A stretch of 64,000 bases of DNA from Klebsormidium nitens (lineage: Eukaryota > Plantae > Klebsormidiophyceae), in the NCBI GenBank assembly GCA_000708835.1, contig DF236995.1:218551-282550 (forward strand). Direction: 5' to 3'. The notes under the pieces were generated by a model. The model saw nothing but the letters and a program-made list of their open reading frames with translations, ran no database searches and was not told where the DNA came from. Positions 48,431 through 58,400 of the stretch are shown piece by piece; positions within the stretch are counted from its first letter, which is position 1; each line of letters starts with the position of its first letter. The translations under genes were made by a program, and so were the position numbers.

Positions 48431-50231
48431 CTATTCGCATTTGCTACATACGGCAATCATATTCACGTATGCCCCAATGTTCTCTGTTAAGAATCTTCCG
48501 ACGGTCATCTTGCCACTTCTATCGACTGACTTGGTGTCATACTTGCAGTGCTTCTTGTGGGTCTTCCAGTGCAGCTTCTGATGTTCTTTGCTGCATCAAG
48601 AGATTACAACTCATAAGCGACAGGAGTCGCGAAATATGAGAATGGACATGGGAAAGAAATAGTTACTCATAGCAACTTTCCGGTGTCAGTACTATTAGAA
48701 CGTGGAGAAAACAGGGAGGGTCGAGATGTTATGGTAGGCCTGAAAGGCTCTCAGCGACGTTCCAAATACTCTTCTCGTAAGATAATCCTTTACCAGAAAC
48801 GATAAAGAGCGATCTCAAAACATCATCAACATAGAACATTGAGTGGTACATGCAGGCCGTTTCCAGAAATTAAATACAGCCCTAGTAGAAGCCCAGAAGC
48901 GAACGAATGGAATGCTAATGTTTCCTTCAGCATTGTTATTTCATATTTCAACAAGAGAGCGCGCGCTTGAGAAAAGGTTTCCGATGAAAACCTTGTCCAG
49001 TATCTGAGATAAAGACAAATCGCTTTTACATTCGAAGTTGCCTGTAAACAAATTTTCAACTATATTGGGTCACATAAGATCGATTTTGACAATGAAAGCA
49101 CGTTAAGCATTTGTTAAGCATTGATCAGGTAGTTTCTTACCAGCAGTAGAGAGCGAGTGAGCAGTCAGCGCACTTGCTAAAGGGCCTGCCAGCATTCAGG
49201 GCCGGACCAACGTCGCACAGCTCCCAGGAGCAAACCAAAGGCGTGTCAATGCGACCGGTTGCCCAAGATTTGGCAGATGGTTTTTGTAGACTCTTGCCAT
49301 GGAGGAATACCGCTTTCTTCATAAGCTTCAGATACTTATCTCGCAACTCTTTTGCTGTCTCCTTATCAGTCTCGGGGCTCCTCATCTGTTTGTCATTTGC
49401 AAGGAGTTGCTGTGCATGACCTGCAAGTATACTTCGGGACCGTGCTGATCCAGCATGATCGGGATTGCTGACTTTTGAACCTTGCAGCCCTTCCTGGAGA
49501 GAAACATCTCTCATAAGCAGTGTGTCAACAGCTGCGTGAACTCTCATCAAACCCTGGTCAAGAGCCCACTGTTGAGTTTCCTCCGAGAGTATGAATATGT
49601 TTATCAGCTGGATGATGTCAGGCAGAACACTTGAGAGAATCTTTGCTGGACACGAACCTGCAATGCCTATTGAAAGAAGGTGCTCAATGGCGGGGAACAG
49701 ATCCTGAAGCTCCTGCACTCCTCTACGAAATGCCTTCGAAGTTCTAGAAAGATTTACGAAGCCCCTGATCAGAGCGCTGGACAAAAGAGGGCCTCTCTTG
49801 TCGGTCTCCTCCACTTCCACTAGAGTCTTATAGGTGTTCATGAGTAAACCAGCAAGTTTTCTTGCTCTCTCCTCGTCTTGGACGCAGAAGCGTGCAACTA
49901 GTTGGTTCTCTGTAAGCGCCACCAAGGACAGGCAGGAAACCAGATCAAGCCAGAATTCTGTTGCTGAGCATTCTCTATGGTAACTCATACCAAGCACAAC
50001 TTCCAGTACTCTTGCCACAATCGCGCCGCGCTTGAACGCTAGGAGCTCCTGGAGCAATCTCGAGTGCTCAACCCTTGCAGAGGGGCTGTAATCTGTGGTC
50101 AGAAGGATCAGACGCTGGTCCAGCAGCCGTTTGGTTGCCGTCCAGACTACAACAGGATCATCGGAAAGTAGCTCCGAAGCGTATTCGTCTACAAGGTGCT
50201 CCATGCTTACAGTGTCTCTTTCTGAATCCAT
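48431..50231 (-). CDS. MYND-type zinc finger protein (copy 1)
   Basis: Exon 50231-49141 ends VCSWELC..FSKCADCSLALYC and splices to exon 48590-48431 CKEHQKLHWKTHKKHC, completing a MYND finger after a ~330 aa helical region. Confidence 0.88.
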
Positions 50232-51524: not shown

Positions 51525-53776
51525 TCAGTCCTCTGCACTGAGAACTTCCGGAGCGTGCGTGTTCAAGCGGTCGTCGTCGGTAATGCTCGCAGAGTTCAGC
51601 GTCTGCTGGACACGTGTCCTCACGGCGGCCTCGAGGAAGCGCGGAGAGGAAGCGTCGGCGGCCGCAGCAGGCTGCAAGCACCAGAGCGGTTTTCTTCATG
51701 AAGGAGAAGCACCACATGAATGAGTCAAAATATTGGGGCAAGGTCGGCTTCTTTTGACGAGAAGCAGGACCTGGCTGACACCAAGCTTGATACCGGATGG
51801 ATATTTATTTTGGATTCAGAATACTGACACGCGTCCTTCTCCGTAACTACGATCGACCAGGTGACGGTTCTCTGAAAGGTGGTCGAGAAGACCCGTCTCG
51901 TAACCTCAGATAAATCAGCATTTATTGGAGGAAAGCGGAAAATTTTCTTCTTCGAAAGGCAACGATTGAGAGAACCAATCTGACTTCCTTGCGACAGACC
52001 TCAAAGATGCGCAAGCAGGTTTTCAAAAGATTCAAATTAATGTTCAGAAAGGAAAGGAACGATTAAATTTACCCGCTGCCTTTGTGAGTAGGCTGTGCGC
52101 TCATTCGCAGCGGCGGTTTTGGTAGGGGCGACGACAAGATCACTCTCTCCTCGATTCTTGGCCTGCTTGCAGTGCTTCTTGTGGGTTTTCCAGTGCATCT
52201 TCTGATGTTCTTTGCTGCAGCAATCAGGGGAAGGATGTGAATGCTCCGCCTCAGAAAGAAGCGCGCTTTGAAGTCTGAAGTGGATATTTAAAAGCGAAGG
52301 CGGCCTGTATATGAACAAACTGAACTAGATGCAGTCCGCAACAATGCAAGATAGAGCTAAAGAAAGAGTTGAAGGGGGTTCTAAGTGTAGCACAAGCGGC
52401 TCACGAACAGAGTGACAGCAATTTTCGGAATCCTAAGAGACGCATCAACCAGAGCAACGCTCGCGGATCCTCGCATGAACTGGTGCTTATTAATTGAGAA
52501 GATAGAAAGAAAAGGCACGGTCGCAAAGTCAGCAGCATCTTGCAACTTCGTTTTGTCCAAGATAACACCACATACTTCGAAGACGTGGTTTTGACCAACA
52601 GACTTTGCCCTTACAGCTTGCCTGGAAAGATGGCAGACATTCTTGCAAACATTCTTACTGGTATCAGGCTGTAAAGAAGCTGGTCCTGACAAGCGTAAGT
52701 CACTTGCAGTAGATAGCGAGTGAGCAGTTCGCGCATTTTCTGTAAGGCTTGCCGGCGTCCAACGCCGTCCCTGCATCGCACAGGTCCCAAGAACACACAA
52801 CAGGAGCGTCAATGCGACCGTTTGCCCGTGCTGCCAAAAACTTTGCGGAAAGATCCTTCGCATCGTCGCTCAAGCACATCTTCTCCCTGATGTTCCTAAG
52901 AAAGCCAGCTCGGAGCTTCTTCGATCTTTTCTTCTCCGTCTTGGGATCCTGGATCTGTCTGTCGATCTCAAGAATTCCCTGCGCCGACTTTTCAAGATAA
53001 GCACGAATCTCTGCGGGTTGCTTCACATTCTGGCGAGATCCCGCCTTAATTCTGTCCTTGAAACGCTGCTCGATGGCGTCGCCTTTCAAAGCCAACTTCA
53101 TCGTCGCTGCTCGAAGTCTGATCAAACCCCGATCGATTGCCCAATCCTGGCATCCTTCTGAGAGTGCGAAGGTAACTATTAGCCTCATGGTATCATCTGC
53201 AGCCCCGTCTAGCACCCTTGACGGGACTGACTCCATCGTCGCAATTCTATCAAGGAGCTGCTCGAATGCTGGGAACAGATTGTGGGCTGCCTGCAAAGTG
53301 CGGCAGAAAGCTTTTGAAGCTCTGGCAAAGTTGACGATGCCCCTCAGCGCAAGTAGTGCAAAGTAAAGCTCGATGCAGCTGGAATCTTCTGATGACTCCA
53401 TGAAAGCTTTATGCGCGCCCATGAGTGCTGCAACAAGCAAGAGCTTATCCTCCACTTCTTGCAAGCAAAATCTTGCAATCAATTGACTGTCGCTTAGAGC
53501 CACCAGCTTCAGGCAAGCGTCTAAATCGATTGTAAGACTCCCGGAAGAAGTGTCTGTTGAGGCCGTGAAGTTAACGGCCTTCCGCAGAATGCTCTTCACA
53601 AGTGCGCCGCCCTTGTAGGCCAAAATCTCTTGAAGCAGCCTTGAGTACTTAACCCTTGCAACAATGTTCTCTTCACCTTGCGGCTTGAGCTCCTCCAAGC
53701 CTTTAATGGTTTCACATATCGTAGCTGGTTCATCTGACATGAGAATTGCAGCGTACTGCTCGACAAGCTGTTCCAT
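51525..53776 (-). CDS. MYND-type zinc finger protein (copy 2), probably with a C-terminus borrowed from the neighbouring hydrophilin gene
   Basis: Exon 53776-52704 (..VCSWDLC..YRKCANCSLAIYC), exon 52214-52073 (KEHQKMHWKTHKKHCK..) and probable exon 51671-51525. Paralogous to copy 1 along its length, with the same intron position inside MYND. Confidence 0.8.
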
Positions 53777-55443: not shown

Positions 55444-58400
55444 TCATTTGTACTGGTTCCCGCTGCTCTTCTGCACCCTCTCTTTCGCCTCGCCCTCGAA
55501 CACCGCTGCCGCGTGCCGGCCGACCGACTTCGCCTCCTCTAGTTTCTTGGACGCCTCGTTCGTAGCCGTCCGTTCCTTGGTCTCCTTCTGGAATCCAACG
55601 GCTCCGGGCCGTCCCAACTTCTGCCCGTCCTTGAGTTTCTCATGCGCTTCGATAACCTCTAGAGTGTGCTTGTTGGAGCCGATCTCATCGGTGGTGCTCG
55701 TGGGGCCCAGCTTCTGCTGGACGCGTGTCTTCACGGCGTCCTCGCGCGAAGACGGGGAGGTATCGACGGCCGCCGCGCCGGACTGCAGCCGCGGTGAGAT
55801 GCACTTGGGATTCCACGACTGAATTGATTTCATGATGCGAGCATTTTGTGAGGAACAGGTTTTCAGTGCTTTGAAAACGGGCTGTACGCAGACCGATCAT
55901 ACATTAAGCAGCACAGATGAAAACGCAGACGCTGCAAAGATGTCCCCAAAATCATGATCATCAACCCCACCCAACACCCTGCCAAGTTCTCTGGAGCTCA
56001 TCCATAAAGTGAGGCCAAAGACCGTCTACATGCTTGGTATTCATGAAAATCGGGTGAATCCTGTCAACAGGCTACAATTGAGCAAAAGATGTAGCAGCCA
56101 ACAACTTCGTGTTCGACTTCGTCAGCTCAGCATATATTTTCCTTTTAAACAAAGAGAAATCAACAATCAGATCAGGAAATGTACTAGCGGTTGAAGCAAC
56201 CGACAGTGGCCGCCTACCTGCTGCGTGTGCGCGAGCGAGTCGGCGGTGCGCTCAACCGCCGCGCTTTGTGCGGGTGCCACGTCAGACTCCGCCAGATAAC
56301 CTTCCTGAGAGGTGGAGTGTCCGTTCGTCCGCTCGTTGCCCTGCGAGCACCGGAAATGCCTATTATAACGTATCAACATCGAAAAGGTATTACCTTTGCA
56401 ATACTGAAGATTTTAATCGTGATGAAGAAGACTACAATGGACTACAATAAGAGATTTCTGTCTTCAAACCAAGACAGAACACCGTTGGGTGATTATCTTG
56501 CCAGTTCAGCGATGAAGATGGGTTGCTTACCTGCTGCTTGTGCGCGAGTGAGTCGGCGGTGCGCTCCACCGCGTCGCTCTGCGCGGGTGCCACGTCAGAC
56601 TCTGCCAGGTTGCCTTCCTGGGACGTGGAGTGCCCGTTAGATCGCTCGTTCCCCTGCGAGCACCGATTTGTAAGGATTATGCTTAATTTCAAAGTATCAC
56701 CTTTTCAACAGCCAGAACATGAGTACCTTAATCGCCATGAGGAGGACTACGATGGACTCCCGTGCTCGAAAATAAAACCGAGGTGTAAGCTTTTGAGAGA
56801 AGTCAACAGCTCTGGAAGAAGCAGCTCTTGAAAGACGTACTGATACTTCTGATGCGCTGCGTGCAACGCTGCCCCTGCGGACGACTGAATCGAGACTACC
56901 CTTGCGAGCGCGAGCGGTTTGAGAGGGAACGAGTTCGTGCTTTCCAAGGCTGGGCTGTACGCGGCCCGATCATACGTAAACAGAACAGGCAAAAACGGCA
57001 GACGCTGAAAAGATATCCCTAGAATCATGACCATCAATTCCACCCACACCCTGCCACTTCCTGTGGAGCCGATCCATGGGAATTCGGTCAAAAACCGTCT
57101 ACAAGCTGAGAATCAAGAGAAACGATGTAGCAGATAACATCTTCATGTTTGACTTCGTCGCCTCCTTACATTAGGTCTGTTCTCGAACCAAGATCACGCT
57201 CCATAGTAAGGAACCTACTAGCCTTTTGAAGCGACGAACATGGGTTGCCTACCTGCTGCTTGTGCGCGAGTGAGTCGGCGGTGCGCTCCACCGCGTCGCT
57301 CTGCGCGGGTGCCACATCAGACTCCGCCAAGTTGCCTTCCTGGGACGTGGAGTGCCCGTTGGTCCGCTCGTTCCCCTGCGAGCACCGGAAACGGACTTTT
57401 GTAAGTGCATGCTTGTTTTGAAACGTTCCACCTTTTCAATACCCAAACCATAAAAAGTGAGAATTAATCATCATGAAGAGGACTACAATGGGGTCCCGTC
57501 CTCAAATAAAAGCACAGTGTAATTCTTCGAAAGCAGAAAGCGCTCTGGAAAAAGCAGCTCTCGAAAAGGTTCCCGATAAAGCTGCCCTGCGGACGACCTT
57601 CTTCAGACTAATTACTCTTCAAATGACTCTTATCCTTCTCGAGACCACGGCTGTGGCTCGCTCGTAACTTGCAACTTCCGAAACGCAATAACCCAGAAGG
57701 GGGTGATGCCGTACTCGCTCCTTGTGCGACAAGGCGTCAGCAGTCCGCTCGATGGCGTCACTCTCAGCCGGAGCAATATCGGACTCGGCTAAGTTACCCT
57801 CCTGAGAAGTGTGGTACCGATCCGACGACTCTCCCTGCAGACGTTCAACCGTTGTAGTTGCTCACGCGAAAGATGGCCCTTACCGAAACTACTATATCAT
57901 AGTAATTCGCTCTCGCATGCACCAACTTTGAGACGCCAGCCCTGATTCTCGCACTGCCTTTATGCTGCAATTGCGAGCTTGCATGTACGATTGCAAAGCA
58001 CAGTCGTCGAGCTGAAACTCAACTTTCGACACGATCTGAAAGTTTTCCGCATTAAAGATCAGCGCACCGGTGTCTTCTGCACAATATACCGACGCCTTCA
58101 AGGAAATTTCTTGAAAACTTCGCGACCATTCACACTCCGCACCTTCAAAGAGTCAGAGGCCCCTCCCACAGCTTGCTTCGCCTCCTGAATCACCTCCTTC
58201 GCCTTATCGTCGACCTTAGCCTCATCCACCTGACCCTTGAACTCGTGGACCAGGTTCCCGGTCTTCTCCTGCACGTACTCCTTCAGCAGCGTGGCGTCCA
58301 GCAGCCCCTCCTATAAAGCCGAAGTCGCAAAGGTCACCCTTTTGATTCCATTTGTTTTTCGGCACGCAATTCTTGGACCCGTTCAAAGCCCGCAATCTCG

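Follow-up and report, generated by a model that had tools for sequence, protein, structure and literature searches.

Three genes stand in a row on the minus strand of the window, by which we mean the whole 64,000-nucleotide stretch of nuclear DNA from the streptophyte alga Klebsormidium nitens analyzed here: a hydrophilic repeat gene (60.4->55.4 kb; the donor gene in what follows), a gene encoding a protein with a MYND finger (MYND-A, 53776->51525), and an intact paralogue of the latter (MYND-B, 50204->48431). A preliminary description of the locus had read MYND-A as a chimera, its MYND finger running in frame into the last modules of the upstream neighbor, which raises the questions of (i) whether the end of MYND-A is indeed derived from the donor gene; (ii) whether a single tandem duplication explains the order of the genes; and (iii) whether the acquired tail is a working part of the protein. 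We consider it probable that MYND-A is a chimera in which the last 79 codons, beginning with the codon after KHCK, come from the 3' end of the donor gene, and that it originated in a tandem duplication that was followed by shortening of the tail and by gene conversion.

MYND-A corresponds to KFL_000460355 (GAQ80125.1, 'hypothetical protein'), which was matched with 100% identity by the minus-strand ORF 53776-52703 in a word search. Its parts are as follows.

52704..53776, minus strand: MYND-A exon 1, 357 codons and 2 nt, armadillo-like helical domain and first half of the MYND finger
52215..52703, minus strand: MYND-A intron 1, phase 2, GTAACT...CTGCAG, inside the MYND finger (junction ...IYC/N/KEHQ in the public protein, P0003)
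52214->52073, minus strand: MYND-A exon 2 as a whole, 142 nt, with the GT of its 5' splice site at 52072-52071
52166..52214, minus strand: MYND part of exon 2, (N)KEHQKMHWKTHKKHCK, which supplies the second half of the finger; its DNA is about 95% identical to 48542-48590 of MYND-B
52073..52165, minus strand: borrowed part of exon 2, QAKNRGESDLVVAPTKTAAANERTAYSQRQR, derived from the 3' two-thirds of one of the donor gene's repeat exons, phase-0 5' splice site kept
51672..52072, minus strand: MYND-A intron 2, 401 nt, GTAAAT...CTTGCAG, positional counterpart of the last intron of the donor gene (435 nt)
51525..51671, minus strand: MYND-A exon 3, 48 codons and TGA (51527-51525), AG at 51673-51672, phase 0

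The public protein ends in ...KHCKQAKNRGESDLVVAPTKTAAANERTAYSQRQR/PAAAADASS...PEVLSAED, with the same junction, residue for residue, as the predicted spliced model. Its end in full, ...CANCSLAIYC-N-KEHQKMHWKTHKKHCKQAKNRGESDLVVAPTKTAAANERTAYSQRQR-PAAAADASSPRFLEAAVRTRVQQTLNSASITDDDRLNTHAPEVLSAED, is exon 2 (52214->52073) followed by exon 3 (51671->51525), the latter supplying the last 48 residues. The exon joins of the chimera are already part of the public annotation, and the gene model is not new. The chimeric source of the tail is apparently undescribed: the gene identifier was found in no paper text searched, nor in the supplements of the K. nitens transcriptome papers PMC9121098 and PMC10272232.

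The public model comprises 228 aa and starts at an internal methionine (MKLALKGD), while the ORF extends about 225 codons further upstream to MEQLVEQY (53102-53776, minus strand), a start conserved in MYND-B and in the relatives P0001 and P0002. The public protein is probably 5'-truncated, and the full coding sequence would be 453 codons; the internal start could mean that the model was built on a partial transcript, which we offer as a hint only. The exon 1 ORF is a 100% match to P0003 over the part that P0003 covers and is 54–60% identical to P0001 and P0002 over its full length. Although no Pfam family matched exon 1, its 357 residues gave an all-helical AlphaFold model (pLDDT 76.6) with weak Foldseek matches to armadillo repeats (E ~0.01–0.1). 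Pfam zf-MYND (PF01753) matched residues 120–148 of P0003 at 32.3 bits, against a gathering cut-off of 22.7 (E 1.1e-7). The 5' part of MYND-A belongs to a Klebsormidium-specific family that combines an armadillo-like helical domain with a MYND finger, and MYND fingers are protein-protein interaction modules.

The donor gene lies just upstream of MYND-A and spans ~60.4 kb to 55444 on the minus strand. The following exons were recognized.

59528-58762, minus strand: large exon with tandem 29-residue repeats
58268-, minus strand: short exon within ORF 58101-58274
57834-57715, 57375-57253, 56653-56531 and 56340-56218, minus strand: four copies of a phase-0 repeat exon of 40/41 codons
56218..56340, minus strand: the last of these repeat exons, 41 codons, phase 0/0, by position the source homologue of the tail in MYND-A exon 2
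55444..55782, minus strand: last exon, 112 codons and stop, of which codons 1–48 are the source homologue of chimera exon 3

The large exon ends at a possible 5' splice site (AAG/GTGAGC) just before an in-frame stop, and a further repeat-like exon lies at 60385-60293 on the minus strand; what had been described as a hydrophilin may be one long gene of nine or more exons instead of two genes. Three of the 41-codon exons are ~94% identical, whereas their introns are ~75% identical with indels (55783-57840), and a similarity of 76% links the last intron with that at 56910-57107. The donor gene has grown, on the minus strand of 55783-57840, by duplication of exon-plus-intron units, and the difference between exons and introns points to either strong exon-specific conservation or concerted evolution. 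A search of 1.84 billion representative proteins returned a single relative of its last exon (P0006, 96 aa, 72% identity, E 5e-33). The same search returned no 100% match to this exon (55444-55782); either the annotated K. nitens proteome lacks the exon or the protein is hidden behind another cluster representative.

The name hydrophilin, under which the donor gene had first been described, fits in part. Hydrophilins are said to have been defined by Garay-Arroyo and colleagues in 2000 by Gly above 6% together with a hydrophilicity index above 1. The donor gene encodes an acidic, repetitive sequence with few hydrophobic residues (A/E/K/S/T/D/Q 61–66%); exon by exon, Gly ranges from 4.9 to 9.8% and GRAVY from -0.67 to -1.21, so that some exons lie within both limits and others within neither. 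The borrowed tail itself falls outside them (exon 2 tail, Gly 3.2%, GRAVY -1.22; exon 3, Gly 0%, GRAVY -0.45). In Pfam, neither the large repeat exon nor the last exon matched a LEA family at E <= 1, and ORF 58101-58274 matched none at E <= 0.1; the only hits were sub-threshold DUF matches.

Both pieces of the MYND-A tail match the donor gene. Exon 3, which had been placed behind a phase-0 acceptor at 51672 and likened to the last donor exon, aligned with that exon by blastn at 71.7% identity over 159 nt (51676-51519 vs 55787-55634, E 3.6e-21) and by tblastx at 48% over 50 aa (E 4e-9); this exon was also its sole non-self tblastn match in the whole window (E 4e-8), and the alignment scored 27 SD above shuffles. 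For the exon 2 tail, an nhmmer profile of three repeat exons matched 52137-52070 in a search of the whole window (E 0.0042), spanning profile positions 52–122 and ending at the phase-0 GT; the shuffle z-scores against repeat exons were 6.9 and 4.1, and the best non-self tblastn match in the window lay at 56289-56236. This second homology is weaker than that of exon 3, yet real. The preliminary description thus had the coordinates and frames of the fusion right, its junction being identical to that of P0003, and both alignments that it proposed, including the continuation of exon 2 after KHCK in register with the phase-0 5' splice site of a repeat exon, are significant. Chance or low-complexity resemblance of the tail is ruled out by the DNA-level E-values and the shuffles.

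The switch from one ancestry to the other can be placed closely. DNA similarity between MYND-A and MYND-B stops at 52166, the last base of KHCK, and the next codons of MYND-A, QAKNRGESD, align with QEGNLAESD of a donor repeat exon; similarity to the hydrophilic gene plausibly begins at the codon right after KHCK. The composition of exon 3 is donor-like as well (GC 65%, GC3 0.73, vs a GC3 of 0.57 in MYND exon 1). Because the ESD..AP..ERTADS motif is native to the donor gene, where it recurs in four repeat exons and in tandem copies in the large exon, the transfer ran from the donor gene to the MYND gene. No other copy of the tail or of the MYND gene was found in the window.

The downstream paralogue supplies the second term of comparison.

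49141..50204, minus strand: MYND-B exon 1, intact, 39–41% aa identity to MYND-A (tblastn E 1e-74)
48431..48590, minus strand: MYND-B exon 2, the same MYND half followed by an unrelated tail (YDTKSVDRSGK...) to TAG 48433-48431 if no further intron is used

After KHCK, MYND-B exon 2 resembled neither the chimera tail nor the donor gene (z 0.9–2.6). A possible 5' splice site (AA/GTATGA, 48538-48545, minus strand) follows KHC-K in MYND-B, exactly where MYND-A switches to donor-derived sequence, and MYND-B may have one more intron and exon. In exon 1, the two copies are ~54% identical in DNA (dN 0.56, dS ~1.9, pS 0.69, dN/dS 0.29), and in a tree MYND-A grouped with P0001 and P0002 and MYND-B with P0005 (support 100/99), these relatives being ORFs from other assemblies, 55–70% identical. 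A dS of ~1.9 and separate relatives for the two copies show the MYND pair to be old. Given its intact 357-codon exon 1 and the dN/dS of 0.29 against MYND-B, MYND-A is a live gene. The second half of the MYND finger is 94.8% identical between the copies over 58 nt (blastn, 48542-48599 vs 52166-52223), with 2 differences in 48 coding nt; we did not count this as gene conversion in MYND exon 2, as the synonymous sites of the segment number only 6, each of them in a two-fold codon whose usage is biased.

This arrangement most likely originated when ~4 kb (roughly 56307 to 52166) were duplicated in tandem long ago, with the left breakpoint inside the last repeat exon of the donor gene and the right breakpoint in MYND exon 2, right after the finger. 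Such an event would leave three genes in the order intact donor gene, MYND 5'::donor 3', and intact MYND copy. Because the phase-0 5' splice site of the donor gene, its intron, and its phase-0 acceptor would have come along with the copied segment, the junction of the chimera would be in frame. Consistent with this, the chimera and the 3' end of the donor gene are collinear in the order of their pieces, in their phase-0 introns, and in intron length (401 vs 435 nt); comparable sizes are also seen for MYND exon 1, intron 1, and the spacers. A stop 48 codons into the borrowed last exon would later have shortened the tail.

The non-coding sequence between these pieces has diverged beyond recognition. 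Intron 2 retains no similarity to the last intron of the donor gene (local alignment z 0.2) and has no repeat elsewhere in the window; searches with intron 1, intron 2, the 3' flank, and the region downstream of MYND-B detected no homology (z -1.3 to 2.6), nor did the comparison of intron 1 between MYND-A and MYND-B (z 1.1). A single intergenic alignment (z 5.1) was gappy and out of register and was not counted as spacer homology. The lack of residual similarity in the introns, 3' flank, and spacers is what an old origin would leave. Homology that would prove the copying of one contiguous segment survives neither in intron 2 nor in the 3' flank or spacers.

Whether the tail is part of the mature message is a separate matter from where it came from. 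The preliminary description took the retention of frame and splice sites as a hint of expression and proposed dN/dS on the borrowed segment as a check. The retention itself holds, GT, AG, and frame being intact, but as a hint of expression it is weak: between exon 3 and the last donor exon, dN/dS is ~0.8, almost neutral, and differences are spread flatly over the codon positions (12/16/18); with P0006 as reference, 14 informative positions had changed on the chimera side, vs 4 and 0, so that 14 of the 18 informative changes are chimera-specific; and the ORF stops after 48 codons, with loss of the conserved K/E-rich remainder of the donor exon and no homology in the 3' flank beyond the stop. 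Judged from these substitution patterns, the tail appears to evolve almost neutrally, with little sign of protein-level constraint.

The same observations fit a history in which the duplication did carry the 3' end of the donor gene behind MYND-A but exon 3 is now a decaying pseudo-exon, the true message ending in exon 2 or in intron 2, and the junction being a gene finder's guess. Read-through past exon 2 into intron 2 would add VNLIVPFLSEH before a stop. The public models were made by mapping assembled transcripts to the scaffolds and predicting nuclear genes with Augustus, and the annotated 52073/51671 junction could be ab initio. Word searches of Logan proteins returned no transcript-derived protein with the tail; this is uninformative, however, as even the strain's exon 1 ORF is absent there. 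A word search with the P0003 tail returned only P0003 itself, one with the exon 2 ORF nothing, and metagenomes likewise yielded nothing when scanned with an alignment of the A clade and, at the DNA level, with a degenerate pattern for KEHQKxHWKTHKKHCK. We nevertheless regard such decay as rather unlikely. Had exon 3 drifted neutrally since the MYND pair arose, it should by now resist alignment as intron 2 does, whereas it keeps 72% identity; the homology is bounded, beginning ~5 nt inside the intron, ahead of the acceptor, and ending ~6 nt beyond the stop, and contains no indel in 144 nt, against 5 indel events per 44 substitutions in the local introns. Moreover, the borrowed part of exon 2 is in frame and would be translated even without splicing.

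On our preferred reading, the borrowed sequence would be translated without bringing a function with it, as a hydrophilic extension of the C-terminus that is probably tolerated and probably disordered; the single-sequence AlphaFold model of P0003 (pLDDT 40) is uninformative about the tail. We give little credence to the opposite view, that the tail is a module kept across Klebsormidium species since the duplication, translated, maintained by conversion, and common to a stress-type hydrophilic protein and an armadillo-MYND adaptor; if it were true, the two proteins would share a partner or a response to drying through the amphipathic RFLEAAVRTRVQQ segment.

The claim that one ~4 kb tandem duplication explains the order of the genes fares well in regard to layout, direction, phases, and intragenic breakpoints, but the ages of the parts seem to disagree. 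Exon 3 and the last donor exon differ at pS 0.36 (dS ~0.5), which is below both the codon-shuffled baseline (0.64 +- 0.07) and the 0.69 of the MYND pair. Where residues are identical, so are the codons in 16 of 22 cases (73%) for exon 3 and the donor exon, with 9.1 expected from codon usage, and in 66 of 135 cases (49%) for MYND-A and MYND-B, with 48.5 expected. Once codon bias is allowed for, the gap between the two pairs amounts to only ~2 SD on 48 codons by our own estimate from these counts, and the introns are saturated. One event alone would therefore not seem to fit cleanly, and later conversion or some other exon-confined constraint would have to be added to it. If the gap is real, exon 3 was homogenised after the duplication, because the adjoining intron is saturated; this hints at gene conversion, limited to the exon that was still similar, as the simplest supplement to the one-duplication model. 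Later conversion between the last donor exon and chimera exon 3 would probably be why the exon is 72% identical while the intron is unalignable.

The discordance could alternatively mean that the MYND pair stems from an old duplication of whole genes and that the donor-like 3' end reached MYND-A separately, either because a second copy of the donor gene, situated between A and B, was joined to MYND-A by a deletion, or through later ectopic copying or conversion of a short donor segment. This would account for a synonymous divergence between exon 3 and the donor exon below that of the MYND pair, and the repeat units of the donor gene show ongoing duplication or homogenisation, as seen in the identities of their exons (94%) and introns (75%) and by the 76% similarity of the last intron to another. 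Duplication of both whole genes with a fusing deletion, however, would leave the same final structure with the same expected ages, so that the discordance remains. A young copied segment would have brought an alignable intron with it, whereas intron 2 stands at z 0.2, and two separate patches arriving in the right order, phase, and spacing are unlikely. We accordingly hold this history to be improbable.

Tandem duplications spanning parts of two neighboring genes are known to generate chimeric genes in Drosophila yakuba and D. simulans (PMC5460883, PMC4069613) and in rice (PMC3673630). As in those cases, the arrangement proposed here comprises an intact gene 1, a chimera of the 5' part of gene 2 with the 3' part of gene 1, and an intact gene 2, with exon-intron structure reused and the frame kept. 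In contrast, the Drosophila and rice chimeras are mostly young and polymorphic, with breakpoints visible in the DNA, whereas the K. nitens chimera is old, with saturated flanks and introns; the two MYND copies have separate relatives, and the tail has been truncated and possibly patched by conversion. Compared with other MYND proteins (PF01753), P0003 scores above the cut-off and has the C..C...C..C...C...H...H...C pattern, here split by an intron, but it matches only profile positions 11–39 of 39, its N-terminal domain is lineage-specific and without a Pfam family, and its tail is foreign. The donor gene resembles the hydrophilins and LEA proteins of streptophyte algae (PMC7289719; Klebsormidium desiccation transcriptome, PMC4207709) in being acidic and repetitive, with GRAVY of -0.7 to -1.2 and Gly of 5–10%; unlike them it matches no Pfam LEA family, and the borrowed part has 0–3% Gly, a GRAVY of -0.45 in exon 3, and no K/E-rich segment.

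The kind of event is already well known, and KFL_000460355 is a real but ordinary chimera; with a well-known mechanism and a tail under little protein-level constraint, it opens no new question. For annotation, the public model is ~225 conserved codons short at the N-terminus and ends in sequence that is not native to the MYND family; it is therefore unsuitable for orthology or domain inference. The product of MYND-A is predicted to be an armadillo-like/MYND adaptor with a short, hydrophilic, and probably disordered foreign C-terminal extension, and the locus would represent a clean and datable case in which exons were shuffled through a tandem duplication, here in a streptophyte alga that stands near the origin of land plants.
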